64,000 nucleotides of DNA, taken from IMG/VR virus record IMGVR_UViG_3300013116_000108, positions 62,001-126,000 of that record; one strand, given 5' to 3'. Each line of letters starts with the position of its first letter. Positions within the stretch are counted from its first letter, which is position 1. Both the position numbers and the translations under genes were made by a program. Shown in pieces: positions 9,528 through 46,246 of this stretch. Below the pieces are notes generated by a model that did no database searches, had not been told where the DNA came from, and saw only the letters and a list, made by a program, of their open reading frames with translations.

Positions 9528-9765
9528 TTTTTAACTTCCTAATACCTCTAGTAAACTTAATTGGTTCTTGTTTCTTGATTGCCGCTATAAATCTTTTTTC
9601 TAAATCTTGTGATACTTCTTCAGAAAAGTTTTCTTTAATCATTTTAATTAGATTAATTGATGATTGTATCAGGTGAGTTGCTCTACTTTCCACCACATGT
9701 TTTCGGTCTTTGTCGATCGCTATCGCATCTAGCTCTTCTAATAATGATCTAGTCTTATGTTTCAT
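9517..9765 (-). CDS. Hypothetical protein
   Basis: 82 aa; GGAG RBS; TAAATA at 9791-9800. Confidence 0.6.
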   Translation of the reverse strand: MKHKTRSLLEELDAIAIDKDRKHVVESRATHLIQSSINLIKMIKENFSEEVSQDLEKRFIAAIKKQEPIKFTRGIRKLKNDN

Positions 9766-9876
9766 TAAGAGTCTCCCTGTATAGTATAGTTATTTATTTA
9801 ATTTCGGATACTTGTTGAAAGATCTTAAAATTGTTTTTGCTCAATATTGGTTAAATACAAGTATTAAGGAGACCAT

Positions 9877-10605: not shown

Positions 10606-10609
10606 TTTC

Positions 10610-11359
10610 TTACAAACGGTATAGTACTTTATCAATAGTACCACTAGTTACTGTTCTAGAAAACCTAATATGTGAATAAACTCCATTCCAATTAATATAA
10701 ACATTGTCTGCTTGGTTTGTATAAGTTTTTTCTGTTATAGTAAACCACTCATCTGTGTCTAATTCGCTTATAGCGGCCATACTACCCTCAATTTTTAGTG
10801 TTCCTGTAAAGTTTGTAAAACAAACTTGGGCTGTGTGTAGTGCTTTATTTTCATTTAAATGCGGATAGGCTTGTACTGATACTGGATTAGCGTCTGGTAA
10901 CGTTATTTCTTGAGAAGCTCTAAACTCCGTATACGGTCCATCTATTACTTCAATATTACCCATAGCACCGTGTTGATCATCTACATAAACAACTCCTCGT
11001 TCCCCACTAGTGTTATCTAAAACACTATAGTTTAAAAAAGAGCCACTAACTTTTTGTAAATCACTTTCTGTTATATCAAACTGTACTTTTCCTTTACTAG
11101 CATTAGTAATTGTGCCAGTTTTACTAATAAGTGTTTGACGTTCTTCTTGATCTAGGATATTAAAGACAAATGTTTTACCAGTAATATCCACGGCTTTCTG
11201 ATCATTATTTTTCATTTCTATTACAATAGGGTTTTTAGCACCTTTGTAAACTTTTAAATTACGAGCATACATAGTCATATTCCTGTTCGGTGTTGACCCA
11301 ATAGTGCTATATACTACTGAGTGTGATTGTGTTGTTAAATATGTTGTAGTTTTTAACAT
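10610..11359 (-). CDS. Probable baseplate/virion protein with BppU-N-like domain
   Basis: PIVIEMKNNDQKAVDITGKTFVF...ITNASKGKVQFDITESDL; late promoter 11387-11392. Confidence 0.5.
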   Translation of the reverse strand: MLKTTTYLTTQSHSVVYSTIGSTPNRNMTMYARNLKVYKGAKNPIVIEMKNNDQKAVDITGKTFVFNILDQEERQTLISKTGTITNASKGKVQFDITESDLQKVSGSFLNYSVLDNTSGERGVVYVDDQHGAMGNIEVIDGPYTEFRASQEITLPDANPVSVQAYPHLNENKALHTAQVCFTNFTGTLKIEGSMAAISELDTDEWFTITEKTYTNQADNVYINWNGVYSHIRFSRTVTSGTIDKVLYRL

Positions 11360-12577: not shown

Positions 12578-12917
12578 CGGGTTCTTCCTTAAAGAACTCC
12601 ATTTTGCCATTTGGGTAATTTTTAGGATCGAATTTTTCATGCTCAGGCATTGGGTCTCCGTTCTCAGTTATTACTGGCCATCCATGTTCGTTAGCATACT
12701 TCCAATTAAAATCTACCCATTTAGCACCATGTTCTGTAGTATCAGAGTGTATCGCATCAACTGGACATTCTGGTTCACATACTCCACAATCAATACATTC
12801 ATCTGGATTAATAACCAGTGTGTTTATTCCTTCATAAAAACAATCAACTGGGCATACCTCCACACAGTCTTTATGTTTACAATTAATACATCCGTCATCT
12901 ACTATATAGGTACTCAT
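12567..12917 (-). CDS. fdxA: 7Fe (3Fe-4S/4Fe-4S) ferredoxin
   Basis: [21 protein letters not shown] and [16 protein letters not shown], FdI-type. Confidence 0.9.
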
Positions 12918-13942
12918 ATTATTTCCTTATTCATACAATTTTCACATATTTGTGATTCTTTATTTTTCCAAACATTGTTTAAATGTTTAGTAAAAAACTT
13001 GTGAGATAAAATCTCTATTAAACTAAATTTATTAATATTATTAAAATCCTGTGGGAATTTTTTTCTAATAGACAGCATTGACCATTCGTTGTCATAAAAC
13101 GCATTATTGGCATTATCTGAAATGAAACAACACGGCCATATCCTGCCTTTAACATCGACTTGTAATGCCAAGTCTTTTAGCCAAGGACAATTAAATTCAT
13201 GTTCAATACTTTTATCTGCCCAAAAATGAACTCCTTCTTTATCAGGATAAAAATCTTCTTGAAGTGATTGTAACTCTTTATAAACTTCATTACTAGGTGC
13301 GGTAATAACTACTTCAGGCATACCTTTATATTCTTTAGCAAATATTTCTTTATCGTAACTTTCACTTATTGTAAAATACCTAAATCCTAAACTACGAGCA
13401 AACTCTTTTGCTTTTTGTACTTGATGTTTATTATGGTCAAATATAATCATACGCCAATGTGCTGTGCCGCCATACGATATAAATTCTTTAGCATTACTTA
13501 TTATCTTTTTAAAGTCAGTTCCTCGCCTATGAATGTAATTAGTATCCTCTAATCCATCAATTGAAAAAACAACTTCGTGCTTTTTAAATTTTTGTAAAAC
13601 AGTTGCTAACTCTCGCCAGTGTTCTAAACTTCTTAACCCCCCGTTAGTATGTATAGAAACCATATCAGTAATATTACCAGTGCTGGCTACTTTGTCAAGC
13701 ATATTAACAATATTAGGATTCATCATAGGGTCACCAAAATTTCCATTTAATGTTAATGCTGATATACTACTATCTTCAAATAACTTTGTCCATGTTTCCA
13801 TACTCATATGCTCTAAGCCAATATGAGGATTAACTTCTCCACCATCAATATTCCTAGAACATCCTGGACAAAACGAATTACAATAAGTTGTCGTTTCTAC
13901 CTGTAAATGTTTAATTACGTTGATGTAAGTTGTACTTGACAT
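12914..13942 (-). CDS. Radical SAM enzyme with SPASM/twitch-like domain
   Basis: [39 protein letters not shown]; paralog of 5459-6547. Confidence 0.9.
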
Positions 13943-24312: not shown

Positions 24313-25514
24313 AATATCACGACATATATCAATATCTTAGAGAAAACTATACATTTGTATTAGATAACTCTAGTCAATTAGATAGAAACACATTATTTCT
24401 TATAAAGATAGCCTCATATTGTATAGACGATAAAATAGTACAAGATCCATCTCTTAACGAAACTAAAGGATACTTTATTTGTCATAAAAACAACCACATT
24501 GTTAATGAAGATATATTAATGTTATTAGCAAAGTACCAACTAGATAATGAAATAACTTCTGTTACTACACCTTGTGGGTCTATTACGGCTATAAATGATA
24601 GTTTTAATAATAGTAGCAAATACGGTGTTAATTTAAGATCTCAAGCAGTAATAGATACTCAAGAATATAAAGATGTAGTAGCAATCGTTAAAGATTGGCA
24701 AACAGAAGATTACAGTAGAAATGCTATAACAACTACATTAGGCGGCTACACATTAGTTCACCACATGTATAATACAGAAAAATACGAAAATAAGTTTGTT
24801 AAGAAAGCAAAGTTAAACAAAAAAGAGTTTGATCAATTTGTTATGTTGCCAAGCGGGTTAAAATTTGCTTGGTTGCTACGTGAACTTAATTGGAAACCGG
24901 ATAATAAATTAGTTTTATTTGATGTTAGTAGTTTTCCTATTTGTTTTGCTAAAGAAATGATACTGTCTTGGGACGGTTCATACCCATTACATGATTGGGC
25001 CATGGAACATCCTATTGCTAAAAGCATATTAATAGCCAGCGGGCAAATTAACGAAGGCACACGACCAGGTGCCGGTCCTAAGGAATGGGATAATATGTGG
25101 AAACAAGAAATTAAAAAATGGGGCGGAGTTGAAAATATTGTAGAAACTATGGCTAAACTAAAACAAGCAGAAGTAAATGGTGACATCGCATGGTGTACTG
25201 TTAATATAGCACACGATAATATTGGTCAAGAACTAATATTTTCTAGTTTAGATAACAAACCTACAGTTTTATGGATTAGTAACATATTTGATTCAAGTCC
25301 TATTGCTTCAATTAATGCTACAAGAATCCGTAACGTCTTTATGGTAGAAAGTAGACTAGGATTAATTCAAAAATGGTATAAAAATTTAAAACAGTTATTG
25401 CCTAATAAAAGTCTAATAATAGGTAGTATACCTCCTACTACTAAAAACGGTTTGGAAATTTCAGACGAAGATAATAAAAAAATTGAATTTCTATCAGGGG
25501 AATTTTTAAAGTAG
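24309..25514 (+). CDS. Hypothetical protein with Rossmann-like C-terminal domain (paralog 2)
   Basis: LPSGLKFAWLL...LFDVS...MWKQEIKKW...AEVNG...LWISNIF...IGSIP. Confidence 0.55.
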   Translation: MKYHDIYQYLRENYTFVLDNSSQLDRNTLFLIKIASYCIDDKIVQDPSLNETKGYFICHKNNHIVNEDILMLLAKYQLDNEITSVTTPCGSITAINDSFNNSSKYGVNLRSQAVIDTQEYKDVVAIVKDWQTEDYSRNAITTTLGGYTLVHHMYNTEKYENKFVKKAKLNKKEFDQFVMLPSGLKFAWLLRELNWKPDNKLVLFDVSSFPICFAKEMILSWDGSYPLHDWAMEHPIAKSILIASGQINEGTRPGAGPKEWDNMWKQEIKKWGGVENIVETMAKLKQAEVNGDIAWCTVNIAHDNIGQELIFSSLDNKPTVLWISNIFDSSPIASINATRIRNVFMVESRLGLIQKWYKNLKQLLPNKSLIIGSIPPTTKNGLEISDEDNKKIEFLSGEFLK

Positions 25515-26345
25515 TTTCTTTGCCGCGTTTTGATTTAAAGTTGCTCTCTCATACATCTTTTTATAACTATCTTCAGGGCCAATAACTTCTTCTAAATACT
25601 GAAAGTTAACTTTTCTTTTAGGTGACATAAACATTACGTTAATTACTCCACCGCTACCAAATACATTTTTCGTAAATCCTTTATAATTATCAGGATTAAA
25701 ATTCCTAACAGGGCACCAATACATTTGAGTGTACCCTAACTTATTAAATCTATTCCATAATGGCTTGAGATTTACCTCATCATTACATTCAATAAAGCAA
25801 GTTGGCAAATGTTTTTCTAATGTACGTTTAGCACCTTTAAATACATTTGGCTCCTCACCTTCTACGTCACATTTAATAAGATCTAATCTTTCAAACTGTA
25901 CTTGATCTAATCGCATAGTAGGCACTAGTTCCATCATTTCGCTACTATTGTTTAAACTAGCCTCACCGTAATTGCCCGGTTTTTGAGGATTATAGTTACT
26001 TAGGTACCTATTTCCAGCACTTCTACTTAAAGCATAAGGATATACTGTAGTATTAGTAATTTGATTTTGTAATAAATTACGTTCTAATAAACCTCTAGAT
26101 AATTCATTTGGTTCAAAAGCATGTATATGACCTTTATGTGCTAGTTTACTAAAAGGTACTGAGTGTGTTCCTATGTTTGCTCCAATGTCAGCAATATGCC
26201 ATTCTGGTTCAATTAACTGCTCTAAGCACATTATTTCCCATTCACAATACTCACCGTATGTTGCTAAACTTTTTCCAATGATAACATCATTGTCAAACCA
26301 AGTAAACTTTCCATGTCTACACTTTCCAGTTGATATCATTTCCAA
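25506..26345 (-). CDS. FkbM-family methyltransferase
   Basis: DIGANIGTHS, AFEP, DLIKCDVEGEE. Confidence 0.9.
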   Translation of the reverse strand: MEMISTGKCRHGKFTWFDNDVIIGKSLATYGEYCEWEIMCLEQLIEPEWHIADIGANIGTHSVPFSKLAHKGHIHAFEPNELSRGLLERNLLQNQITNTTVYPYALSRSAGNRYLSNYNPQKPGNYGEASLNNSSEMMELVPTMRLDQVQFERLDLIKCDVEGEEPNVFKGAKRTLEKHLPTCFIECNDEVNLKPLWNRFNKLGYTQMYWCPVRNFNPDNYKGFTKNVFGSGGVINVMFMSPKRKVNFQYLEEVIGPEDSYKKMYERATLNQNAAKKLL

Positions 26346-27728: not shown

Positions 27729-28321
27729 AATTTATACTCTTTTACCATTTCTTTAAAATATTCTTGGTGTGCTTTACTTGTAGGATGATCTTTTGGCATC
27801 CTACCTAAATTGTTGTCATCACAATAGTTTACAAGTGATGTTTTTGTGTGCCAGTTATTGCCATGAAATTGTGTTAGTTGAGAATCAGTTGATGCTATGC
27901 TTGTAAAGAAATATATTTTATTGCCTAGTTGTTGACAGTATTGCTCGAGGTGTTTAAATCTCTTATAGTAATAATGTTCTAATGTATGTTCATTATAGCA
28001 AAATTTAACATAATGGTCAAGTGTTTTCTTCAATCCTTGTAAGGGAAACTTGGGTTCCCTTCTGTTACTAATTGATTGACTTTGCATATTATTAGTATCA
28101 ACGTGTGGCCAATATACTCTACTAATATCAGTTATACCTACTAATATAGTATGTCCTAATTTAATATTTTCGTATGCTGTAAAAAGAATCTCTTCGTTAC
28201 TTGAACCTGCTTTGCTATAATTCTCTAGTGGTTCGTTAATGTGCTCAGCAAACAACTTAGGTATAGTTGGTTCTGTTTCTATTTCTTCACCTGCTACAAT
28301 ACTACAACCAAATGCTAACAT
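27725..28321 (-). CDS. SGNH/GDSL-like hydrolase or acyltransferase
   Basis: AFGCS, KAGSSN, DHPTSKAH. Confidence 0.55.
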   Translation of the reverse strand: MLAFGCSIVAGEEIETEPTIPKLFAEHINEPLENYSKAGSSNEEILFTAYENIKLGHTILVGITDISRVYWPHVDTNNMQSQSISNRREPKFPLQGLKKTLDHYVKFCYNEHTLEHYYYKRFKHLEQYCQQLGNKIYFFTSIASTDSQLTQFHGNNWHTKTSLVNYCDDNNLGRMPKDHPTSKAHQEYFKEMVKEYKL

Positions 28322-28959
28322 TTTAAAAACACAGCCTCTTTTTTATACTGTTGCTCTTGCCAAGTATAACCAATTGTTGATAATAGTTCTTTTACTTCAG
28401 TGTGGTACTGTTTTTCTTCTGTGGTTCGTCTAGGTAATTCTACTACTAAACATACGTCATTATTTTTTAATGTTTCTAATGACCCTAATATTACTTCTTT
28501 TTCTGTACCTTGTACATCTATCTTCATGTATCCTACATTAGTTAAGTTGTAACCATCTAATGTCGTGACATCTGTTACTATTTCTGAAATTCTTTTTGCT
28601 TTAGTAGGATCTAATGACGATGCTCCGCACGAACCGCCATTAACATAAACTGGCTGGTCTCTTAGATTTTCCTTACCTAGTGCTACATAATATAATGTAT
28701 AATTCTCACTAGTAACATTTTTTTCTAAACACTCTCTATTATCTGCCATTGGTTCAAAAGCATGGACATGGTTAAATTTTGTACAAAGAGGTTTTGTCCA
28801 AAATCCGATATTAGCACCGACATCTACGGCTACAGTATTAAAGTCTTTTACATATCCGAGAGTAATGTCCCTACCGTATTGTTGATATTGTCCGTTAGAC
28901 ATATAATTTTCAAAATGTGTATCATAATCTGGCATCCACCAACCTTCTACATTTTTCAT
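28315..28959 (-). CDS. FkbM-family methyltransferase
   Basis: VDVGANIGFW, AFEP, YMKIDVQG. Confidence 0.9.
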   Translation of the reverse strand: MKNVEGWWMPDYDTHFENYMSNGQYQQYGRDITLGYVKDFNTVAVDVGANIGFWTKPLCTKFNHVHAFEPMADNRECLEKNVTSENYTLYYVALGKENLRDQPVYVNGGSCGASSLDPTKAKRISEIVTDVTTLDGYNLTNVGYMKIDVQGTEKEVILGSLETLKNNDVCLVVELPRRTTEEKQYHTEVKELLSTIGYTWQEQQYKKEAVFLKC

Positions 28960-35166: not shown

Positions 35167-35428
35167 TTGATATTCCTAATATTGTTGATTCATACTTATA
35201 ATTATCAAAATAATCTTTTGCCTTTTTATATTTTGTAATTAATCTGTACAGATTTGTTTTGTTATTAATTCTATTATAGTCGTTACAAGATCTATTCATA
35301 TCTTCCATTAAAATGTTTAATGTAGAGTACATTGAACTTTTCTTTCGTGCTACAAAAAGATCATATGTTGTGTCTTTAATGCTATCCCATTCAGCAAACA
35401 ACTTTCTTGCTTTTTTATAGGCTAACAT
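35144..35428 (-). CDS. Hypothetical protein
   Basis: 94-aa ORF tiling with its neighbours. Confidence 0.45.
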   Translation of the reverse strand: MLAYKKARKLFAEWDSIKDTTYDLFVARKKSSMYSTLNILMEDMNRSCNDYNRINNKTNLYRLITKYKKAKDYFDNYKYESTILGISNGSTIKQ

Positions 35429-35885
35429 CTTCCATACCTGCTGTTCTTAAACGTGTTATATGTCCTAGTTGCCATTGTTTTGCTTCCAGTCCTTTCATAA
35501 TACCTAAGTATCTATTTCGTAAAAGTGCTACTTCATTTATTAACGTTTCAAAGTCAATTACTTCATCTTCACCGTCAACATACTTTTCAGCATCTCTTGT
35601 TGACAATGCTCTAGCATAACTTTCTAAATAATTTTTAAAATGTTTACGTCTGATTTTTCTTAATTGTATATTAAGAAAGTTTAGCACAGCCTCAATTTCT
35701 TGAAGTTCGCTAAACCTTACTTCTGTTTGTGCTGGCAACTCTTTAAGATTTGTTTCTATGTTGCCGTGAATATTTGATTCTTGACGTGCTGTTATTAATA
35801 CACCATTGTAGTAATCTAGGAAATCGGGTAAATTTCCTAGATTATTTACTACTTTAGAATACCAGTTTTGATTATTAATATTCAT
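35415..35885 (-). CDS. uvsY: Recombination mediator UvsY
   Basis: YLESYARALSTRDAEKYVDGE...LLRNRYLGIMKGLEAKQWQL; downstream of uvsX. Confidence 0.8.
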   Translation of the reverse strand: MNINNQNWYSKVVNNLGNLPDFLDYYNGVLITARQESNIHGNIETNLKELPAQTEVRFSELQEIEAVLNFLNIQLRKIRRKHFKNYLESYARALSTRDAEKYVDGEDEVIDFETLINEVALLRNRYLGIMKGLEAKQWQLGHITRLRTAGMEDVSL

Positions 35886-36124
35886 TAATCCTCATACATC
35901 TCGTCGTCATCTTCTTCTTCGTAATTCTCTTCTTCGAGAATTTCAGCAATTGGTGTTTCTAACACATCATCTGCTTCTGCTAGGGCGTCTAACAATTCTC
36001 TGTCGGCCCCGTTGTCTTGTAATATACCTATCCAATGCTCTCCTGCTTTTTCCCTATCTTTTTCGGGTATATATTCTTTAAGCACCGACCAGGTTTCAAC
36101 GATAATATCAGTATCTATTGACAT
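35885..36124 (-). CDS. Small acidic hypothetical protein
   Basis: 79 aa between uvsX and uvsY. Confidence 0.55.
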   Translation of the reverse strand: MSIDTDIIVETWSVLKEYIPEKDREKAGEHWIGILQDNGADRELLDALAEADDVLETPIAEILEEENYEEEDDDEMYED

Positions 36125-36133
36125 CTTTTCTCC

Positions 36134-37222
36134 TTATTCGTTATCAAATTGATCCTCGGGAATTTCTTCTTCCGCACTACTTATATTATCATCTTTTGTA
36201 TTTTTTGCTCCGGAAATGATATCGTTCATTACAACCTGTAATCGTTCTCCGGTCCACTGCTTACGAAATTCTTTAATTTCTTCTCCAGTACTAGATGTAT
36301 ATTTGAGTTTATTGCCGTCTTTAACAACTACACCATTCTTTTCAAACATGTCAAGTAATCCACTATAAGGATCCATTCCTCTATCATAAGGAATTTTAAC
36401 TTGTACACCTTCAAAAGGTTTAGCATATCTTGTTTTCATAACTTTACAACCTGCTCTAATACCTCTTACATCACTAATTTTATTGCCTGCTTCATCTTCT
36501 TTTAGTTTCAATTTCTTCATTGCTACTACAATAGAACTAGCATAGATAAATCCTTGTCCTCCTGATATCTTATCATCTGGGTCAAACATATCTTGTGAAG
36601 CATAAGTGTGATTTGTACATACCATACCTACGTTATAAGCACCAATCATATTAACAGTATTACGAACAAGAGCCGTAAGTGCTTTAGGTTTTCTACCCAT
36701 ATCACCTTTCATATCGCCCTTATCAAACTGATCTACATCTGTTGGTGTTAATAACATACCTAATGAATCAATTACAAACATTACTTTTGTATCTGCCCTT
36801 TCTTCAGGCTCCATGGATTTGTAATCTTTCATAAATGTTGAAATAGTTTTTGCTACATCGTCAATCATGCTCATTGATAACTTTAAAAGTTTTTCAGGTG
36901 AAGTATCTACACCCAAAGCATGAAGCCATGTTTCATCTAAAGCATTCTCAGAGTCAATTAGTACTACAAAAATACCTTGCTCTTGAGCGTGTTTTACAAT
37001 ATTACCAGCCGCAAAATAACTCTTACCTGCTCCTGACTCTCCAGCGAACACGGTTACTTTGCCTAGTGGTACACCTTTATTAAAGTCTCCACTAATTAAA
37101 TAATTTAAACAGTAATTACCTGTTGAGACCCAATCTGTTGGATCGTGAAATCCAATTGACAATCCGTCAATTGATTTTGTTATATCTTTTCTAAACTTAC
37201 TTACGTCAAATGGTTTTGCCAT
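36134..37222 (-). CDS. uvsX: RecA-like recombinase UvsX
   Basis: AGESGAGKS, LIDSENA, FVIDSLGML, TNHTY, SGGQG. Confidence 0.92.
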   Translation of the reverse strand: MAKPFDVSKFRKDITKSIDGLSIGFHDPTDWVSTGNYCLNYLISGDFNKGVPLGKVTVFAGESGAGKSYFAAGNIVKHAQEQGIFVVLIDSENALDETWLHALGVDTSPEKLLKLSMSMIDDVAKTISTFMKDYKSMEPEERADTKVMFVIDSLGMLLTPTDVDQFDKGDMKGDMGRKPKALTALVRNTVNMIGAYNVGMVCTNHTYASQDMFDPDDKISGGQGFIYASSIVVAMKKLKLKEDEAGNKISDVRGIRAGCKVMKTRYAKPFEGVQVKIPYDRGMDPYSGLLDMFEKNGVVVKDGNKLKYTSSTGEEIKEFRKQWTGERLQVVMNDIISGAKNTKDDNISSAEEEIPEDQFDNE

Positions 37223-37243
37223 AATTGCCTTCCTTGATTAATT

Positions 37244-37273
37244 AAAAGTGTAACAGACCGAAGCCTGTTACAC
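37244..37273 (-). terminator. Rho-independent terminator after gp32
   Basis: GTGTAACAG-gcTTCGgt-CTGTTACAC followed by TTTT. Confidence 0.85.
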
Positions 37274-37287
37274 TGACTTACTAAGAT

Positions 37288-38295
37288 TTACTTCTGTTGA
37301 CGATCTCTAATCATTGCTAGAATATCATCTGCCTTTTTAGCAGAAGTTGTTTCAACAGGAGCCTCAGCCTTTGCTACTGGAGCCGGTGCTGGAGTACTAA
37401 CTTCTTCTGTTGTAGTTTCAGCAACTGGCTGTGTTGAAACAGCCGGAGCGGGAGACGGTGTTGCCGTAGTAGAAGTAGTTGTTTGTGTACTGCCTTGAGG
37501 AGCACTAACACCAGCCGGACGATAATAAGCACCAAATTTCTCGGTATCGTAAGGCTTGCCATCAACTGATTCCTCAAACATTTGTTTGATGATGTTAAGT
37601 TCAGTTTCTGACGGTTTCTTAGGTAAGAAGTCATTCAATGTAAACAACCCATGTGTGTCAATTGCTGTTTGTTCTTCAGCACTTAATGGAGTTTCTTTAC
37701 GAGCCCATTTAGATGTTGAATAATCAGCATAGCCACCTTTTGTGGTTTTTGTTACACGAAAATCTAGTCCAGCAGTTGAATCTGTTGGTAATTCGTCCAT
37801 TTCTGGATCCATTAAACTTGCTTTAATAATATTAAAGAGTTGTGGCCCCATAATAAAACGTCTGATTGGATTTTCTGGAGTTGAATCTTCAGTTAGAGGA
37901 TTTTCTCTAACAAATCCTTGGAAAACGTACGAACGTTTCTTCCAGTACTTACGACCCATGTCCTCTAGTGAGCTGTCTTTAAACCAAGGACGAACCTCAG
38001 TCAAGATTGGACATGAACCAACTGGTTCCCACATTTCCATACACGGAACTTGTACCGTACAAGGTTTGCTATTAACGTCGCCTTTAATACCTTGGAAAGG
38101 TAAACGAATCATTTGACGTTCTGCCCAGAAAAATGTATTACTAGAATCTCCATCAGGGAGAAACCTTAATGTAGTACTTTCGTTTTCTTGGATGTTCCAG
38201 TGAGGGAAGATAGCATTATCTCCTCCTGTGCTACTGCCTGATTGGCGTGTTTCTTGAGCTTGTAGCCTAGCTCGTATTTCCGCAAGTGATGCCAT
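37288..38295 (-). CDS. gp32: Single-stranded DNA-binding protein (T4 gp32-like)
   Basis: LRFLPD, CPIL, RKYWKKRSY, DFRVTK, YADYSTSKW, DDILAMIR tail. Confidence 0.9.
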   Translation of the reverse strand: MASLAEIRARLQAQETRQSGSSTGGDNAIFPHWNIQENESTTLRFLPDGDSSNTFFWAERQMIRLPFQGIKGDVNSKPCTVQVPCMEMWEPVGSCPILTEVRPWFKDSSLEDMGRKYWKKRSYVFQGFVRENPLTEDSTPENPIRRFIMGPQLFNIIKASLMDPEMDELPTDSTAGLDFRVTKTTKGGYADYSTSKWARKETPLSAEEQTAIDTHGLFTLNDFLPKKPSETELNIIKQMFEESVDGKPYDTEKFGAYYRPAGVSAPQGSTQTTTSTTATPSPAPAVSTQPVAETTTEEVSTPAPAPVAKAEAPVETTSAKKADDILAMIRDRQQK

Positions 38296-38473: not shown

Positions 38474-39067
38474 TTAAAGTTTTTTCCATTCTGAGTATAT
38501 TCTATCACTTTGGGCGTCCCATTTACACTCAAGTACTTCACAACCATATTTTTTAGCCCATTCATAATTAAGTTCAAATGTCCAAGGAAAAAACTGTATT
38601 TCTTCAACACCTTTCCAAGGATGATCTCCTATTCCTGGATTTTGTCGCCAATATAATATACCGCCCGGTTTTACTAGATCAACTGCTTTTTGAACTTGTG
38701 GTTCAACATCTTCTGCTGTGCCAAAATTCAAACTACCTAAAACAAATGCTATATCCCATTGTTTCCCATTTGCTTCAAATTCTTCAATTCCTACTACTTC
38801 GTCTGCTTTATCATTAGCAGGGTCAAAGCCATAAAGTCGGTCACCTAACTTTTCTTTAAATGAATTAAAACCACAACCAATATCAATTACTGTATCGTTA
38901 GGTCCTACTTTGTCTAATAATGCCCAGCCACTGTATTCATAGTGCTTATAATCTGGTTTCCAGTTACTACCAAAATATTTGTTTACTGTATTTTTGTCCA
39001 CTTGGTTTCCCTCCTTGTCTCGTTTCCATTTATGTTTAAAATAATGAACTACTGTTTTATTAACCAA
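38474..39067 (-). CDS. Class I SAM-dependent methyltransferase
   Basis: VIDIGCGFN, YGFDP, FVLGSLNFG, VKPGGILYWR. Confidence 0.85.
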   Translation of the reverse strand: MVNKTVVHYFKHKWKRDKEGNQVDKNTVNKYFGSNWKPDYKHYEYSGWALLDKVGPNDTVIDIGCGFNSFKEKLGDRLYGFDPANDKADEVVGIEEFEANGKQWDIAFVLGSLNFGTAEDVEPQVQKAVDLVKPGGILYWRQNPGIGDHPWKGVEEIQFFPWTFELNYEWAKKYGCEVLECKWDAQSDRIYSEWKKL

Positions 39068-40112
39068 TGTAATCCTCCAATTTTCCTTCTCTATATAAGT
39101 CTTGTGTTATACAATGTATTCCCCCGTCCCAAAAATACCTATGCCTAAAGTTAAATATTATAGGCTCTACTTTATGCTTTTTAAAGTGGTCAAACACTTC
39201 TTTGTTATAGTTGTTACATATAATTGTATTTTGATCAATAGATAACATATTAACATCAAAAACTGTTTCTTCTACATAGCCTACCCAATCCTTTAACCAC
39301 GTGTTGACAAATTCTATTAATTGATCGTTATGCTCTTCTCCTTTTAACCACCAGCGTCCTCCAACTTTCCATTTCATCTGTAAGAACGGATCAACTTTAG
39401 ACCACGATTGGTCTGGCAAATATAATACGTCCCATCCAGGAAATTGTGTTTTGTAGTCTTGTATATCTTTTAACGACACAATACATCCGGGCTTAACTAC
39501 ACAAAAACAACCATCGGAATGATATCCCCTATGTGATCTGTGTACTCTAAATCCTTCTTTGTTCCAGTTTTCAATTAACTCTTTTTCTAAATCAGGTGGA
39601 GCATTTTCGGCCCACCTTTCATGCGAGTCCCAAAATAAATCTTTACCAACTCTACAAATTTGTGCTGAACTTATAAATGGTGTATAACCTTCCCACGGTG
39701 TATCAAGTGTTTGCTCGGTTATGTATATGTCTTTTTTATCAACCTGATTAACAATGTCAATCATACCACCCTTGTTTAAGAACTCGTTTCTTTCACCTAC
39801 ATATAACTTTTCGCCAACAACACAAAAATGATCTCTTGGGGTCATTGGTGGGCGCCATACATCATTTAGTGATTTATATTTGCCGTCACCTTCAATGTTT
39901 AAAAAACTTCTATATGTTTTTACACCACAAGATTCTAGTATGTCAACTAATTTTAAAAAATCTTCTTCGGTTTCATCAGCAATACGTTTAAGGGGATCTA
40001 AAATTTTATTATTCTTAGGAAATAAATCTTCAAACCATTCTGCTTTAAATCCTGATCCGACCCAGCAATGCTTTAAAGGATCAAATGTAGAATATCCTTT
40101 AATTGGAATCAT
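39060..40112 (-). CDS. Amidinotransferase (glycine/inosamine-phosphate amidinotransferase family)
   Basis: YSTFDPLKHCWVG, PMTPRD, HSDG, GGIHCITQDLYR (Cys-His-Asp residues present). Confidence 0.85.
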   Translation of the reverse strand: MIPIKGYSTFDPLKHCWVGSGFKAEWFEDLFPKNNKILDPLKRIADETEEDFLKLVDILESCGVKTYRSFLNIEGDGKYKSLNDVWRPPMTPRDHFCVVGEKLYVGERNEFLNKGGMIDIVNQVDKKDIYITEQTLDTPWEGYTPFISSAQICRVGKDLFWDSHERWAENAPPDLEKELIENWNKEGFRVHRSHRGYHSDGCFCVVKPGCIVSLKDIQDYKTQFPGWDVLYLPDQSWSKVDPFLQMKWKVGGRWWLKGEEHNDQLIEFVNTWLKDWVGYVEETVFDVNMLSIDQNTIICNNYNKEVFDHFKKHKVEPIIFNFRHRYFWDGGIHCITQDLYREGKLEDYIG

Positions 40113-40707
40113 AGACTGCTATCCAAACATCTTTTTGAAATATAAAATCAGCATCAATGTTAAACTCGTTTCTAAGCCATTCACGACCTGGCTTTCGTAA
40201 TGTAAGATTATGTTTATAACAAAAATCTAATATTGCTTTATTTTGTTCTGTTATTTGATGATTCATAGTTGTATTATCTCTGTACCATTCATAACTAGGA
40301 TAACTAATATCCCAACCTCCTGCTTCATGCCACCAGTTGTAACATTCGTCGTCTGGCCTATAACACATTACAATTTTGCTATCAGGAAACGTTTCTTTTA
40401 TATTGTTTAGATAATAAGCAAAGTTATGACTTAGTATTAACTTAATATCGTCATCTTTACCTAAGTAACTTTGTGCTATTTCTTTTTGCCATAGGTTAAA
40501 CGACCCAAACTCCTTATCTAACCATTGTCCGTTAAGCATTCCAGGACCGTAGTAGTTTCCTATGTGTCCACTATACTTGTGATGTGTGTATGTTTTCTCA
40601 GGTACTAAATCTGTGTTGTCTACGTTAGTGCCGTGGTCTCTAATATGTTGACTTACACCACTCCAACGACTGCCAGGTGCTCCTGTAAAGAAAATCCAAT
40701 TTTTCAT
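40099..40707 (-). CDS. Sulfotransferase-like / P-loop fold protein
   Basis: FFTGAPGSRWSG, ILSH, KIVMCYRP. Confidence 0.45.
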   Translation of the reverse strand: MKNWIFFTGAPGSRWSGVSQHIRDHGTNVDNTDLVPEKTYTHHKYSGHIGNYYGPGMLNGQWLDKEFGSFNLWQKEIAQSYLGKDDDIKLILSHNFAYYLNNIKETFPDSKIVMCYRPDDECYNWWHEAGGWDISYPSYEWYRDNTTMNHQITEQNKAILDFCYKHNLTLRKPGREWLRNEFNIDADFIFQKDVWIAVYDSN

Positions 40708-41057
40708 GTGTATACACTTCCTATTATAAAGTAATCAACAACAAATGTCAACTCAGCACCTAAAAATACTGCTATCCAATAGTTGCCTATCCAATTCCAT
40801 AACTGCTTGATAACCCACCAAGCCATTAATACTCTTATTGAGTATAACACATCTGCCCATATGATGTCAAGCCATAGAAACGAATCTGCTTGAAAATAAT
40901 TGTAGAATACAAAGTTATCGTATATAAAACTTAATTGGGCCATAAAGAATACTGCCCAATAGTAAGTTAAATATTTGTTTAAAAATTTAACTAGTGGTCC
41001 TGAAACCACTAGTCGATATATGACATAGGTAAAGTTAGCGATTGCTAACTCAATCAT
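40704..41057 (-). CDS. Small integral membrane protein (3-4 TM)
   Basis: Hydrophobic, aromatic-rich 117-aa ORF. Confidence 0.65.
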   Translation of the reverse strand: MIELAIANFTYVIYRLVVSGPLVKFLNKYLTYYWAVFFMAQLSFIYDNFVFYNYFQADSFLWLDIIWADVLYSIRVLMAWWVIKQLWNWIGNYWIAVFLGAELTFVVDYFIIGSVYT

Positions 41058-41722
41058 TAGCTCACCTTAGTTTCGTCGTGTGGTAAACTACCATCGTTTA
41101 GTAAGCCATTTCGCTTACGTTTATCAAGCCAACTATGTTCAACACTATGTACATACTTGGCATTTGGATCTTTGTTTAGAATATAATGAAGTCTTTCATC
41201 TGTAGCATCTACAGGAATATTAAGCAAAGTGTCTAACGACTTTAAATATTGATGTCTAAACAAATACAGCAATTCTACACTTAAGAAAACGTGAGAATAT
41301 TCTATAATATCTTCAATCTTATTAAGAAAGTTGTGATAACTTTCTACACCTCTTTTTCTTAACTGTCCTTGTGCCATAATATTTTGATCTCTACCAATAA
41401 TGCCAACTTGAAGGTTTCCTACTTTGTTCAATTCACTTAATACTTCTTTGTAGTTAGGATAAACTGTTTGCTTTTGCCCGTCTATAATATCTACATATGG
41501 TCCACTTACACTAAGAACCCAGTTATTACTAGTAGACCAATCATAGTCTTTAATAGTTTCAGGCTTAGACCAAATATCTTTAAACGGTGCCGCATCGTGA
41601 TTTATCCAATACTCTCTTAACAGGTCATCCCAACCTGATACATCATCATGTAATGATAATGCTTTGGAATAAAGGTGATTACCGGACCCTTGAGGCCCGG
41701 TAATTACTAAAATGTTTGTCAT
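41057..41722 (-). CDS. Sulfotransferase-like / P-loop fold protein
   Basis: LVITGPQGSGNH, VGIIGRD. Confidence 0.45.
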   Translation of the reverse strand: MTNILVITGPQGSGNHLYSKALSLHDDVSGWDDLLREYWINHDAAPFKDIWSKPETIKDYDWSTSNNWVLSVSGPYVDIIDGQKQTVYPNYKEVLSELNKVGNLQVGIIGRDQNIMAQGQLRKRGVESYHNFLNKIEDIIEYSHVFLSVELLYLFRHQYLKSLDTLLNIPVDATDERLHYILNKDPNAKYVHSVEHSWLDKRKRNGLLNDGSLPHDETKVS

Positions 41723-42774
41723 TATTTCACTAACTTGTCTTTGTATACTGCTGGAATATTCAAAGCATCATTTGAAAACTTGATTAAATCTTTCAGTGAA
41801 TCTTCTGTAATGAACGACATCAACGTATCTCTTTGATTGTTGCCTGCTTCACCGATAATCCAATCATACTTTCCAACTTTCTTTTGGATAGCCTTGATTG
41901 CTTGAGGATCTTTAGACATCTCTAACAAAGCCGCCTGTAATTTCTCAGCATTAGGATTGCCTTTGTTTACCCAGAACGCTTTTTGTAAAGAGTCACGGAA
42001 TGATTTTACAAGTTTGTAAGCATCATACATTGGACCTGATGGAGCAACACCCCATTTTTCTTCAAATAAGATTTCCATTTGCTTTCCTGGATAGTTAGGA
42101 TCGTCAGCGTGTGATCCGTCTGCTTGTAGAATACCATGATGGAACCAAACTTCTGCTTCTTCATTAGGAGCAATATGCTTTTTAAATGCCGCAGGATTTT
42201 CTCTGTCAACAGTTAGTTCACCACGTTTAAATGCTAAACGTCTAGCACCACCGTTACCAAATCCTGGAACCCAGTTAACGTGTGATTTGAAACAAGCAGA
42301 ATATTCATCAATTGATTTGCCTGGGCCACATAATAACAATGCCATTCCCATAGCGTCAGGTACACGACCTGATTTTGAAGCAAAGATAATGTTTTCCATA
42401 TCAGCATCTAATCTCTTACCAACAATAATGTTTAAGTTCATCATGCCAATTGATTCCCAATCAGCATAGTTATAGTCAACATCTTCTTGTAAGAATGATA
42501 CACCATTACCACCATGCGATACCATAACAATAGTATCATCAAATCTTAGTTCGTTTTGAAAGGCGTTAACTGCAGGAATATCTCTAGCGCCTGGAAAGTT
42601 TCTAAGTTTTAGAGTGTCATTTGGTAAGAATCTTTGTAGTTCTTTGAGAACAATTTCTGTCCATACTGTTGTTCCTGAGCCCGGCTTTTGCGGTACAACA
42701 AACGTAAACGTTTCAGCAAATGCTGATCCTGTAATGCCTAGTGTTAGTACTAGTGCCATTAATAATTTTTTCAT
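41722..42774 (-). CDS. tctC: Tripartite tricarboxylate transporter substrate-binding protein (TctC/Bug-like)
   Basis: Signal peptide (...SAFA), FVVPQKPGSGT, NFPGA; tctA nearby. Confidence 0.7.
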   Translation of the reverse strand: MKKLLMALVLTLGITGSAFAETFTFVVPQKPGSGTTVWTEIVLKELQRFLPNDTLKLRNFPGARDIPAVNAFQNELRFDDTIVMVSHGGNGVSFLQEDVDYNYADWESIGMMNLNIIVGKRLDADMENIIFASKSGRVPDAMGMALLLCGPGKSIDEYSACFKSHVNWVPGFGNGGARRLAFKRGELTVDRENPAAFKKHIAPNEEAEVWFHHGILQADGSHADDPNYPGKQMEILFEEKWGVAPSGPMYDAYKLVKSFRDSLQKAFWVNKGNPNAEKLQAALLEMSKDPQAIKAIQKKVGKYDWIIGEAGNNQRDTLMSFITEDSLKDLIKFSNDALNIPAVYKDKLVK

Positions 42775-42893
42775 TTCTATTTTCCTTTTAATAATCAGAA
42801 TTATACAAGCGAAATGCTTGGATAATTATTTTGTTTTTGATTGTTTGCTACACTAAGAACCCTGACACTCGTCTAAGTTTGTGTATTGTGGAG

Positions 42894-42925
42894 TATAATA
42901 CAGCTCTGTATTACATTTTTATTTA
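42894..42925 (-). promoter_or_regulatory. Late promoter TAAATA and a 5' hairpin upstream of tctC
   Basis: TAAATA at 42925-42920, then TAATACA-GAGC-TGTATTA. Confidence 0.5.
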
Positions 42926-43611
42926 TCGTTTTTTCTTAGCACAAAATAATACCTGACTCCTCTGTCATTTACTTCTTGTTCGAGGGTTAAGATACTACAA
43001 TTTAAAGCACTAGCAGAATTAATAATAAACTCATTAGTCCAATTAAAAAATTCTATCCATTGTGCTTCAGGAGCCTTGTGCTGTTCTCCTGGATTAACTC
43101 TAAAATATAATAAACCGCTAGTCTTTGTTAAGTTTACAGCATTCTTTAATTCAGCATATATTTTATCTACAGTACCAAAATTAATGCTACCTAAACAAAT
43201 AGTAATATCATATTTTTCAGTTGGTTTGTATTCTAATATACTACTGTTAATATCTGCTCTTTCATTGTACGGATCTACACCAGTTAGGTTGTTGATCTTT
43301 CCTTTGAATTCATTATAGCCACAGCCTAAGTCTAAAACTCGTAAAGGCTTTAAGTTATTAACTTCATCTATAATACTTAATCCACTATACTTGTACTTTT
43401 TTGTAATAGGTTGCCAAACAGTAGCAAAGTATTTTTTAAGTACATGATAGTGGATAAGTTCTGTTAAATCTTTAACATTGGTAAAATTAATATCTTTAAT
43501 GTCAACACCAAAAGTTCCATTGATTGCCTGCTGTAAAAGTTTATTGTCATCTAATAGTTGTGGACTAGATTTAAACATAGTACACAGCCTGTCTAAAATT
43601 TTAGTGTTCAT
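42919..43611 (-). CDS. Class I SAM-dependent methyltransferase (paralog of 38474-39067)
   Basis: YKYSG, VLDLGCGYN, GVDP, ICLGSINFG, LLYFRVNPG. Confidence 0.85.
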   Translation of the reverse strand: MNTKILDRLCTMFKSSPQLLDDNKLLQQAINGTFGVDIKDINFTNVKDLTELIHYHVLKKYFATVWQPITKKYKYSGLSIIDEVNNLKPLRVLDLGCGYNEFKGKINNLTGVDPYNERADINSSILEYKPTEKYDITICLGSINFGTVDKIYAELKNAVNLTKTSGLLYFRVNPGEQHKAPEAQWIEFFNWTNEFIINSASALNCSILTLEQEVNDRGVRYYFVLRKNDK

Positions 43612-43618
43612 TAATTAC

Positions 43619-43942
43619 CTATAATGCTTTATGTAGTTGCTTAACTAGTTTATCTTTTGATAAACGTCTATCTAATTCAATACCTTTTTCTCTACCCATT
43701 TCTTCTAACTGTTTTTTAGTTAGTTTAGCAAGAGCTTTTTTTGTAGGTTTAGCAACAGTTTTTTTTGTTGCTGTAGCCTTAGGTGTTGCTTTAGGTTTTG
43801 CTGTAGCCTTAGGTGTTGCTTTTGCTTTAGGCTCTACTTTATATGCTACTGTTGGTGCCTTTTTTGGTTTGGCCGTTTCTTTTGCTTTTTCTTTACCAAA
43901 GAAAATTTCAGTTAGAGTAGGCCATCCTTTGAAAATACTCAT
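43619..43942 (-). CDS. Lys/Ala/Pro-rich histone-H1-like protein with C-terminal Rho-N/HeH-like motif
   Basis: PKAKATPKATAKPKATPKATA; LTKKQLEEMGREKGIELDRRLSKDKLV. Confidence 0.6.
   Translation of the reverse strand: MSIFKGWPTLTEIFFGKEKAKETAKPKKAPTVAYKVEPKAKATPKATAKPKATPKATATKKTVAKPTKKALAKLTKKQLEEMGREKGIELDRRLSKDKLVKQLHKAL
43768..43822. repeat. 25-bp direct repeat with 30-bp period encoding KATPKATA
   Basis: ttgctgtagccttaggtgttgcttt at 43768 and 43798. Confidence 0.9.
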
Positions 43943-43952
43943 TGTATTTCTC

Positions 43953-44660
43953 CTATATGTCTACCACATTATTAAAACTACCAAACTGTACTAGATCTCT
44001 TGTGAGGTCTGTAGTTAGTCCAGTAATTTGTAACATTGGCCTATTGTCCCAACCCATGTTACAAGTGGCGTGTGGTATATCCCGCCACTCCCATGTTATA
44101 CATTGTCCTTTACTCCATTGATGCCAGTTGCTATTACCTAATGAAAACACTTGTCCGTGTTTCCAATCATCTAACATAATAACAAACCTTCTCATAAGCT
44201 CAGGGTTCTTATCTGCTTCTATTTCTACAAAACTATTTCCGCGTTCTTTACGACCCGCAAAATTGTCTATATGCCAATTTAACATTTGTCCTGTTATTTG
44301 GTTATGAAACTTAATTGTTGCTTCTTCCATGCCAAAGTAATTAGCAATTTTTTTAAAAACTTCTATGTCTTCTGCCTTTGTTCTTTTGAATACTTCCATT
44401 TGCGGATTTGCTCCTGCTCTTTCTAAGTCGTATTCTTCTTGATTAGCACTATATATTCTATCTTTGCCATCAACTTTATTTCGTGTAGCCCATGTACTAG
44501 TTACTACTCTTTCTAAGCACTCGTTAACAGCATCTTCCCAATCACCATTAAACGTACAAACTTCTTGATAGTCTTTACTTACTACTTCTGGCCTAAAGTG
44601 CCATTTACTTTGTTTCTTTGTAAAATCCCAACGGCTTTTACCCCAGTCTTCGTTTGTCAT
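43953..44660 (-). CDS. 2OG-Fe(II) oxygenase-like protein
   Basis: KFHNQITGQMLNWHIDNF (HxD), PHATCN, RPMLQITG. Confidence 0.7.
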   Translation of the reverse strand: MTNEDWGKSRWDFTKKQSKWHFRPEVVSKDYQEVCTFNGDWEDAVNECLERVVTSTWATRNKVDGKDRIYSANQEEYDLERAGANPQMEVFKRTKAEDIEVFKKIANYFGMEEATIKFHNQITGQMLNWHIDNFAGRKERGNSFVEIEADKNPELMRRFVIMLDDWKHGQVFSLGNSNWHQWSKGQCITWEWRDIPHATCNMGWDNRPMLQITGLTTDLTRDLVQFGSFNNVVDI

Positions 44661-44672
44661 TTGCTATCCAAT

Positions 44673-44807
44673 CTATTTTATACTTCCGTTTAATACACGT
44701 TTACTATTAGGGTGCCTTTTTGCTGTAAACGTGGCGTGTGACATATTCTTTTTAATTCTTGGGACACCTTTTTTTACTATAATGCCCGGTACTGCTCTTT
44801 TTCCCAT
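44673..44807 (-). CDS. 44-aa highly basic peptide (absent from the ORF track)
   Basis: MGKRAVPGIIVKKGVPRIKKNMSHATFTAKRHPNSKRVLNGSIK*; TAATG overlap with the tctA stop. Confidence 0.65.
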   Translation of the reverse strand: MGKRAVPGIIVKKGVPRIKKNMSHATFTAKRHPNSKRVLNGSIK

Positions 44808-46246
44808 TATGAATACTCCAATTTATTTTTTCTAGAAACACCGTACACAAACAAGCCTACAATCAGTACACACAATACTAAAAAGATAGGTCTTTGTAAT
44901 AATTTATCAAAAGTATAAATGTGTATTAAGTTTAATGTCAGCGATTCAAATTTAGTAGCAAGTATAAATGCCATAAGCATACCTGGTCTACTAAATTTAT
45001 ACTTTTTACAAACAACACCTAGCACCGAACATATTGCTAATATGGCATAGTCTTCCCAACCGCCTGTATATTGTACACAGGCCCAAATTATAAATGCTAC
45101 AATTAAAGGGAAATAATATATGTAAGGCACATAACAGATCTTAGCAATGTATCTATTAAATGTTATACAGATAATACCAACTAATACTGTTGCCCACATA
45201 AAGCCAAATGTTAGACTATCAAAAAACTTTGTGTCGTAAGCAATTTCTTGAGCACCTAGTTCAAACCCTAAGTACATAAACAGTCCCATAAGAACTGCGG
45301 CAAAACTTGCCCCTGGTATACCAAACAATACTGTTGGAATCATACTAGTTGCTTTTTGTGAGTTGTTAGCACCTTCTGGTCCTACTACTCCTCTAATATT
45401 ACCTTTGCCAAATTCTTCGTTAGGATGAGTTGCTACTGTTGAACCATATGCCATCCAGTCTGCCATAGCACCGCCAATGCCTGGTAAGAATCCTATAAAG
45501 GCTCCAATGGCTCCGCCACGTAGGGCGTCCCATTTCATTTTCCATACTACTTTAATACCTTCCCAAGTTTGCTTCATTTGAGTATTTTCTTTCATATGAG
45601 CTACTTGTTGGCCTTTCTTCCAGCCATCTAATATTTCTGGAAAAGCAAATAGTCCAGCAACAAAAGGCATAAGTTGTACACCGTCGCCTAAGTATTCCCA
45701 ACCGCCTGTGTATCTATCAAAGTTTGTTAATGGATCTGTACCTATAAGTCCTATTCCTAGTCCTACAAGAATTGCTATAATACTTCTAAACCAAAATCTG
45801 TTACTAACAAATCCTACACAGGCAAGAGCCATTACCATGAATGCCCATAACTCTGGAATGCCAAAGTACATAATAAGTTGTACATACCAAGGCAATAAAG
45901 CAAAGGTTAGTGTACCCCATATAAGTCCGTTAAGTGTTGAAGTTGTAATTGCGGCCGTTAAAGCATAAGTGGCTTTACCTTGTTTTGCTAACGGGTATCC
46001 GTCAACCATAGTTGCCGCGGCTGAATTGGCGCCTGGTATTCCTAATAATATTCCCGAGTATGTGTCGCCTGTTGTACTGGCGGCTACTACTGCCATACAA
46101 AATATTACGCCTAAGTAAGGATCAAATCCAAAGTAACTGATAAATCCAAATAAGGCTACTAATCCTGTTGTTGCTCCAGCACTAGGTACTAGACCTACAA
46201 TCAAACCATAAAATGTACCTGCTAATAAAGTGTAAATTTCTTCCAT
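44807..46246 (-). CDS. tctA: Tripartite tricarboxylate transporter large permease TctA
   Basis: GILLGIPGANSAAATMVDGYPLAKQGKA, GFLPGIGG, GVVGPEGANN, PTVLFGIPG; about 12 TM. Confidence 0.92.
   Translation of the reverse strand: MEEIYTLLAGTFYGLIVGLVPSAGATTGLVALFGFISYFGFDPYLGVIFCMAVVAASTTGDTYSGILLGIPGANSAAATMVDGYPLAKQGKATYALTAAITTSTLNGLIWGTLTFALLPWYVQLIMYFGIPELWAFMVMALACVGFVSNRFWFRSIIAILVGLGIGLIGTDPLTNFDRYTGGWEYLGDGVQLMPFVAGLFAFPEILDGWKKGQQVAHMKENTQMKQTWEGIKVVWKMKWDALRGGAIGAFIGFLPGIGGAMADWMAYGSTVATHPNEEFGKGNIRGVVGPEGANNSQKATSMIPTVLFGIPGASFAAVLMGLFMYLGFELGAQEIAYDTKFFDSLTFGFMWATVLVGIICITFNRYIAKICYVPYIYYFPLIVAFIIWACVQYTGGWEDYAILAICSVLGVVCKKYKFSRPGMLMAFILATKFESLTLNLIHIYTFDKLLQRPIFLVLCVLIVGLFVYGVSRKNKLEYS

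Follow-up and report, generated by a model that had tools for sequence, protein, structure and literature searches.

Uptake genes are a known theme among viral auxiliary genes, and those of phages are known mainly as single binding proteins that depend on host transporters. The phosphate-binding protein PstS of cyanophages is presumed to help the infected cell acquire nutrients; it is a phage-encoded periplasmic binding protein and is annotated in Synechococcus phage S-SCSM2R. Bacterial TctABC systems (BugD, BugE, MatC, AdpC and TphC being examples) combine TctA, the large permease of tripartite tricarboxylate transporters (TTT), with an adjacent and often translationally coupled binding protein, and to our knowledge all characterised TctC/Bug proteins take carboxylate-type ligands. 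In viruses, tctA was listed as a putative auxiliary gene with "protein domain hit only" on SUP05 viral contigs (Roux et al. 2014, PMC4164917), a mention that is restated in a review (PMC6359870). Here we analysed a 64,000 nucleotide stretch, referred to in its entirety as the window, of IMG/VR contig 3300013116_000108 (204 kb) and found at 38474-46246 a row of genes for a TctA permease, a predicted binding protein of the TctC/Bug fold and several putative tailoring enzymes. We hold with moderate confidence that large marine T4-like phages carry this region as an auxiliary cassette, with a TTT-type importer as its core and tailoring enzymes coupled to it. Like the bacterial systems, the phage pair consists of TctA and an adjacent, often coupled binding protein of the same fold. 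Unlike them it is phage-encoded, its binding protein misses the Pfam TctC model and was found on phage-like contigs only, no TctB is recognisable, and the pair is linked to methyltransferase, sulfotransferase-like and oxygenase-like proteins. Compared with cyanophage PstS, the cassette adds a membrane permease and would have no need for a host transporter, and the transporter is a secondary one and not of the ATP-binding cassette type. With the SUP05 viral contigs it shares the TctA domain match, whereas the passages on tctA in that paper describe no binding protein, cassette or distribution.

The region is occupied by ten open reading frames (ORFs), all on the minus strand, or 11 if a 44-codon ORF is included:

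38474-39067, minus strand: o1, second methyltransferase-like protein, 197 amino acids (aa), a paralogue of o7 without the N-terminal ~40 residues
39060-40112, minus strand: o2, amidinotransferase family (AGAT/StrB1 type, from a family profile), 350 aa, accessory gene
40099-40707, minus strand: o3, sulfotransferase-like P-loop-fold protein (from an AlphaFold2 model and weak Pfam matches), 202 aa
40704-41057, minus strand: o4, small aromatic-rich hydrophobic protein with 2-3 membrane-like segments by hydropathy, 117 aa
41057-41722, minus strand: o5, P-loop-like protein with a G-P-Q-G-S-G-N-H motif and no Walker lysine, 221 aa
41722-42774, minus strand: o6, predicted secreted solute-binding protein of the TctC/Bug fold (from its predicted structure) with an N-terminal signal peptide, 350 aa
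42919-43611, minus strand: o7, class-I S-adenosylmethionine-dependent methyltransferase-like protein (Methyltransf_23 and motif), 230 aa, the core methyltransferase
43619-43942, minus strand: o8, lysine/alanine-rich protein with a short C-terminal helix-extension-helix-like motif, 107 aa, lineage-specific
43953-44660, minus strand: o9, 2-oxoglutarate (2OG)/Fe(II)-oxygenase-like protein (motif and weak matches), 235 aa
44673-44807, minus strand: small basic ORF of 44 codons from public gene calls, its start overlapping the TctA stop, of uncertain reality
44807-46246, minus strand: o10, TctA, large TTT membrane permease (Pfam PF01970), 479 aa

A first-pass annotation of the same DNA had described ten contiguous same-strand genes between gp32 and the packaging genes, several with overlapping stop and start codons. 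ORF coordinates and PHROG matches agreed with this arrangement, and five junctions from o1 to o6 overlapped (o1/o2 by 8 nt, o2/o3 by 14 nt, o3/o4 by 4 nt, o4/o5 and o5/o6 by 1 nt each). Two gaps of ~145 bp were found in the row, before o6 and before o9. The 44-codon ORF was conserved solely in its own lineage and in the nearest relative, L004, at 86% identity (L-numbers denote viral loci and c-numbers ORF family clusters). The ratio of nonsynonymous to synonymous substitution rates (dN/dS) was 0.03-0.2 for the core genes, with o4 in the same range. This purifying selection, together with the recurrence of the core in dozens of viral contigs, argues that the gene row is not due to chance.

The permease was identified directly from sequence. 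o10 matched PF01970 at E 1e-97 (327.8 bits, cut-off 28.9) over model positions 3-421 of 423, a near-complete match that upheld its TctA label, and its dN/dS was 0.03-0.16. Eight of the ten proteins could not be assigned from scans of single sequences against Pfam, NCBIfam and PHROG, and family alignments built from viral loci were needed. The binding protein was assigned by structure. Neither o6 nor any of 24 relatives matched Pfam, the TctC model included, and a profile search of the PDB with the o6 family reached BugD at E 0.065 only. An AlphaFold2 model of o6 made from 49 sequences (predicted local distance difference test (pLDDT) 90.6, predicted template-modelling score (pTM) 0.86) was compared with the PDB, and the best 17 matches all belonged to the TctC/Bug family (E 1.6e-10 to 1.7e-7, template-modelling (TM) score 0.5-0.68). 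These included the terephthalate-binding protein TBP, TphC, BugE, BugD, Bug27, MatC, AdpC and Polaromonas TctC, with sequence identities to o6 of 11-15%. By its predicted fold o6 is a divergent TctC, so that the TctC label, for which sequence search alone gave nothing, also stood, and with it the proposal that a TTT-type permease and its binding protein are both encoded by the phage itself. The stop codon of TctA overlaps the start codon of the binding-protein gene in many lineages (L018, L019 and L020, for example), and such translational coupling of permease and binding protein is also seen in cellular uptake operons.

It is very improbable, in our estimate, that the TctA/TctC-like pair serves something other than nutrient import, such as sensing, keeping competing phages out at the envelope, or export. 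Bug-type proteins can signal, the binding protein is highly divergent from cellular TctC (no Pfam match and the low identities given above) and TctB was not recognised, all of which would suit such a role. Against it, TctA is full-length and strongly conserved, the pair is often translationally coupled like cellular uptake operons, and signalling or exclusion domains were not found in the gene row.

A small membrane subunit was sought among the short ORFs near the pair. o4 gave no Pfam match at E <= 0.01, and hence none to the TctB model, had a dN/dS of 0.08-0.15 and lay after the binding protein in four lineages; it may be a candidate stand-in for TctB. In many lineages without o4, a 72-88-aa membrane protein with 2-3 hydrophobic segments (cluster c9, L015:13275-13538 and equivalents) followed the binding protein or the oxygenase-like gene. 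This protein matched Pfam DUF6552 at E 7.5e-11 and is another candidate for the small subunit in place of TctB.

The gene neighbourhood was then compared across viruses. IMG/VR was scanned with TctA, giving 60 loci at 55-100% identity, and with the amidinotransferase, giving 11 loci; the window proteins were searched against all loci and the ORFs of the loci were clustered into families. Collapsing TctA at 95% identity gave 25 lineages, 18 of them well flanked (at least 3 kb on each side), and co-occurrence was counted as a gene within 6 kb of TctA in these 18 well-flanked, non-redundant lineages. The binding protein (o6) was near TctA in 18/18 lineages, the o7-type methyltransferase in 16/18, the sulfotransferase-like gene (o3) in 13/18 and the oxygenase-like gene (o9) in 11/18. 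The counts were 4/18 for o4 and 2/18 each for o5, o8 and the amidinotransferase (o2). Co-occurrence in related phages therefore held for TctA, the binding protein and the methyltransferase, sulfotransferase-like and oxygenase-like genes, and failed for the amidinotransferase, o5 and o8. Over all 25 lineages, the binding protein was no more than 6 kb from TctA in 24 and its immediate neighbour in 19. The o7-type methyltransferase directly adjoined TctA in most lineages. Some loci (L011-L013 and L022) carried the TctA/binding-protein pair with none of the enzymes, indicating that permease and binding protein can also occur by themselves.

That the cassette travels in one piece was seen directly in L068. 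At L068:12383-16802 TctA, the binding protein and the sulfotransferase-like, oxygenase-like and methyltransferase genes are inserted between the backbone genes c22 and c23, which are adjacent in L067; in L072 a single unrelated gene occupies this position. The cassette also abuts the TerL gene in two lineages whose TerL proteins are ~30% identical.

The enzymes were assigned from families, motifs and models. o7 matched Pfam Methyltransf_23 at E 4e-4, under the curated cut-off, and this model was matched by 21/24 relatives, all below the curated cut-off, with a best E of 7.6e-6. A D-x-G-C-G motif was invariant in the family. o1 was 38% identical to o7 (E 9e-36), and the two methyltransferases first proposed are thus paralogues whose Methyltransf_23 matches are subthreshold but consistent. 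The o1-type gene stays beside gp32 in relatives without the amidinotransferase. o3 gave an AlphaFold2 model with pLDDT 94.4, for which the top match in BFVD was a "Sulfotransferase family" protein of an uncultured Caudovirales phage (TM 0.87, E 5e-17). Against the PDB the o3 model gave weak matches to nucleoside monophosphate kinases and sulfotransferases (Cpz8, Stf0) that were equally good, with a best E of 4e-3. Sulfotransfer_4 was weakly matched by 16/67 and Sulfotransfer_3 by 10/67 o3 relatives, all subthreshold and amounting to 26 of the 67 scans, and 0/67 matched Pfam kinase families. Compared with sulfotransferases dependent on 3'-phosphoadenosine 5'-phosphosulfate (PAPS), such as the Sulfotransfer_3/_4 families, Stf0 and Cpz8, o3 shares the P-loop-type fold class and weak recurrent matches and has a structural twin in BFVD. 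It differs in that all its matches fall below the curated threshold, its fold is equally near nucleotide kinases in the PDB, and its P-loop fits neither the classical Walker A motif nor, on reading, the usual PAPS 5'-phosphosulfate loop.

The first-pass annotation had named two sulfotransferase-like proteins, and only o3 kept this label on fold, Pfam and BFVD evidence. o5 was rejected as a second sulfotransferase because hhalign aligned it to o3 over the P-loop only (the first ~40 residues). A search of 1.84 billion proteins gave 158 representatives related to o5, and this family had no significant or recurrent match in Pfam or the PDB. For o9, a label of 2OG oxygenase is plausible: H130-x-D132, H197 and R207, corresponding to the iron triad and the basic residue for 2OG, were invariant across 44 relatives, while the database matches were weak. 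2OG-FeII_Oxy_3 was weakly matched by 9/44 of these relatives (best E 0.011), and the best PDB match was the 2OG dioxygenase AtsK at E 0.1, across the second-His/Arg motif. o8 had weak PHROG matches limited to its C-terminal 40 residues. Profile-to-PDB searches for o3, o5 and o7 returned nothing informative.

The data show directly which genes and folds are present, how often they co-occur, that the cassette is mobile and that its genes are under purifying selection. From these parts we infer the following scheme for the cassette. During infection, the binding protein would be exported to the periplasm of a Gram-negative host, where it would capture a small anionic organic solute, probably of carboxylate type, and hand it to TctA, which would import it by means of the membrane gradient. 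The part of TctB may fall to a small hydrophobic protein, namely o4 here and the DUF6552-type protein elsewhere. In the cytoplasm the methyltransferase, the sulfotransferase-like protein and the 2OG/Fe(II)-oxygenase-like protein would act on the incoming solute itself or on one of its metabolic products. The genes o1, o2, o5 and o8 would be lineage-specific additions to the same accessory island. A bolder version, which we think rather unlikely, is that of a virus-specific, self-sufficient importer of marine jumbo phages with a small phage tailoring pathway (methylation, oxygenation and possibly sulfation), by which the infected cell would take up and convert an environmental organic anion that its uninfected host does not use; if true, it would constitute a novel class of auxiliary metabolism in viruses.

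Several results weigh against an importer coupled to tailoring enzymes. No ORF of the row matched the TctB model in Pfam and no TctB homologue was found by sequence, and several lineages are without a small membrane ORF beside the TctA/binding-protein pair. With no match to the TctC model of Pfam, o6 could bind a class of ligand other than that of known Bug proteins. An Rfam scan of the region found no riboswitch or other ligand clue. The labels of o3, o7 and o9 rest on subthreshold matches, motifs and, for o3, one fold, and they do not inform on the substrate. The enzyme genes change places around the transporter from one lineage to the next, which fits independent accessory genes that share an island as well.

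This last point leads to the main rival, in which the enzymes have no functional tie to the transporter pair, both having accumulated as accessory genes in a hypervariable island, and act on a macromolecule such as virion proteins, host envelope glycans or phage DNA instead of the imported solute. We regard this as possible though not likely. The gene order varies, with enzymes on either side of the transporter and sometimes on the other strand (L034), and the pair is found alone in L011-type lineages. Relatives of an FkbM cluster lie elsewhere in the window, and FkbM methyltransferases are common in glycan modification. The amidinotransferase homologue of S-SCSM2R and a 2OG oxygenase were detected in a purified-virion proteome (PMC12801897), which also suits an action on virions. 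On the other hand, the methyltransferase is linked to TctA in 16/18 lineages whose backbones differ and five genes moved as one insert in L068. The sulfotransferase-like and methyltransferase families were also absent from the cultured phage genomes searched in GenBank. GenBank phages gave no match to the o7 methyltransferase, and the o3 family was found there in the single-virus genome AG-345-D19 only. As the sulfotransferase-like matches came only from this uncultured single-virus genome, the enzymes do not look like generic phage tailoring genes.

The amidinotransferase was evaluated separately because the first-pass annotation had placed it at the centre of the row. A profile of eight relatives matched L-arginine:glycine amidinotransferase (AGAT) in the PDB at E 4e-14, followed by SxtG, HsvA and StrB1, and the match to AGAT came in two stretches covering 200 N-terminal and 66 C-terminal positions. 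In the active site, H198 (in H-S-D-G) was kept in 8/8 and the Cys (in G-G-I-H-C) in 7/8 sequences. The profile search confirms o2 as a member of the amidinotransferase family. Relative to the AGAT/StrB1 family, o2 matches both halves of the fold and keeps the active-site His and Cys, but it is distant (E 4e-14 at best), the column of the AGAT triad Asp holds other residues, read as Ser/Thr or as Ser, Cys or Asn, where the alignment is possibly shifted, and it is no fixed member of the cassette.

The row had been proposed to encode one pathway that imports a precursor and builds a guanidinylated, methylated, hydroxylated and possibly sulfated product, by analogy with creatine-type chemistry or the cyanobacterial guanidinium-toxin clusters. 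That o2 is a genuine member of the amidinotransferase family whose best matches are AGAT and secondary-metabolite amidinotransferases speaks for this, as does the overlap of its gene at both ends with the sulfotransferase-like o3 and the methyltransferase o1. Neighbouring amidinotransferase-like and sulfotransferase-like genes in AG-345-D19, and an o2 homologue in S-SCSM2R (34% identity, annotated glycine amidinotransferase) that adjoins 2OG oxygenases, point the same way. However, the amidinotransferase was near TctA in only 2/18 lineages. The nearest relatives L004, L007 and L010, with neighbour genes 84-99% identical, carry an unrelated 233-aa gene in the o2 slot and keep the sulfotransferase-like gene and the o1-type methyltransferase on either side of it. 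In L067, L071 and L072 an amidinotransferase occurs with no TctA, binding protein or member of this methyltransferase family within 10 kb, and elsewhere it was also found without sulfotransferase-like genes. The Ser/Thr in place of the AGAT triad Asp and the absence of the catalytic cysteine from the AG-345-D19 copy count further against this pathway. In a cluster of guanidinium-toxin or creatine type the amidinotransferase would be expected to be conserved together with its tailoring partners, and in the phage cassette it is not. As the amidinotransferase is no stable member of the gene group, we consider a single guanidino pathway improbable. The pairing of amidinotransferase and methyltransferase read as creatine-type is likewise not conserved, and the synteny counts point instead to a mobile uptake cassette with tailoring enzymes, correcting the toxin-like reading of the region.

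In AG-345-D19 (Marine virus AG-345-D19, MH319720.1) the sulfotransferase-like gene and a 431-aa amidinotransferase-like gene are adjacent on opposite strands at ~9344-11281, and it is this amidinotransferase-like copy that is without the catalytic cysteine. In other lineages (L067:5084-13266, L071:5169-13913, L072 and L068) the amidinotransferase was part of a conserved gene block with GTP cyclohydrolase I, GMP reductase, a Vut_1/YhhQ-type transporter, a small cupin and a 299-aa QueE-like protein (c22, weakly QueE-like at E 1e-3). L071 had two amidinotransferase copies with only the cupin gene in between. This block hints at a link of the amidinotransferase to nucleotide or deazapurine metabolism instead of the transporter, and as a side possibility the amidinotransferase of those lineages might guanidinylate a nucleobase precursor or DNA. 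A clean 7-deazaguanine cluster was rejected for the block, as c40 proved to be an RNase H/flap endonuclease, c58 a GMP reductase and c43 a cupin. None of the genes of the block (GTP cyclohydrolase I, Vut_1, c22, c40, c58 and c43) was found in the window.

The binding-protein family was then sought outside viruses. One genome per species from 185,579 bacterial and archaeal species was scanned for exact matches to the two most conserved peptide patterns, a scan that would miss distant cellular relatives, and three relatives were found, all on contigs of metagenome-assembled genomes (MAGs). These contigs (L074, L075 and L076, labelled Weeksellaceae, Polynucleobacter and Legionellales) each carry the methyltransferase, TctA and the binding protein in the order seen in viral loci, and the longest, L076, additionally carries PhoH, a sulfotransferase-like gene, c10, c8 and c6. 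The phage gene families and gene order indicate that they are phage contigs binned into cellular MAGs. Other MAG labels on cassette contigs were Euryarchaeota and Betaproteobacteria TMED156, and the labels are mutually inconsistent. To judge from the exact-pattern scan, the binding-protein family appears to be confined to phage-like contigs. At E <= 0.001 the family comprised 1,503 cluster representatives, and the best 120 of these 1,503 included none with a Pfam domain or an informative name.

Among GenBank phages, megablast with the region gave no match. A tblastn search of the same phages with TctA returned seven records only, at 26-32% identity, which look like bacterial or unannotated fragments and were rejected as instances of the cassette. 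Full-text literature searches that combined the transporter-family term with viral contigs or auxiliary metabolic genes found nothing beyond the two papers on SUP05 tctA, and no characterised phage system of this composition was found, as the first-pass annotation had stated. As far as the searchable literature shows, the phage TctA cassette is essentially undescribed.

What is new is the combination of permease, binding protein and linked enzymes as a mobile cassette in at least 25 lineages of large marine phages, Tara Oceans included. Uptake genes themselves are familiar in viruses; what this cassette adds to them is a full secondary importer whose binding protein belongs to a family of its own, together with linked tailoring enzymes. 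If the cassette works as proposed, infected cells would gain a capacity for transport and conversion that is invisible in host genomes, and the attribution of dissolved organic matter fluxes in the ocean would be affected. The binding-protein family, with its 1,503 representatives and no Pfam model, lends itself as a clearly delimited family to structural studies and to work on its ligand.

The genes around the row and the contigs that carry it place the virus:

35415-38295: UvsY, UvsX and gp32, flanking the gene row
37288-38295: gp32, PHROG ssDNA-binding protein, E 1e-68
between the gene row and TerL: virion-protein-like gene, 742 aa
48555-50132: TerL, E 2e-116
also around the gene row: tail tube and tail sheath genes

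The TerL of the window was 51.6% identical to its nearest relatives, those of PA5oct-like Pseudomonas jumbo phages, and was also near those of Atu_ph07 and Phosso. Together with the T4-like neighbour genes, this PA5oct-type TerL indicates a large, distant T4-like myovirus, here with a GC content of ~34%. Contigs encoding an identical TctA reach a maximum of 291 kb, which points to a jumbo phage and not to a standard T4-like cyanophage or pelagiphage. Marine metagenomes, those of Tara Oceans included, contain relatives. The window has no tRNA genes, and a promoter and terminator scan of the region gave a signal no higher than background.

Outside the gene row the window holds further candidate tailoring genes. 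Two ORFs at 25506-26345 and 28315-28959 on the minus strand are related to a cluster whose representative matches Pfam FkbM methyltransferase. Two paralogous ORFs of ~350 aa at 5459-6547 and 12914-13942, also on the minus strand, belong to cluster c35, whose members stand beside the cassette in L011- and L055-type loci.

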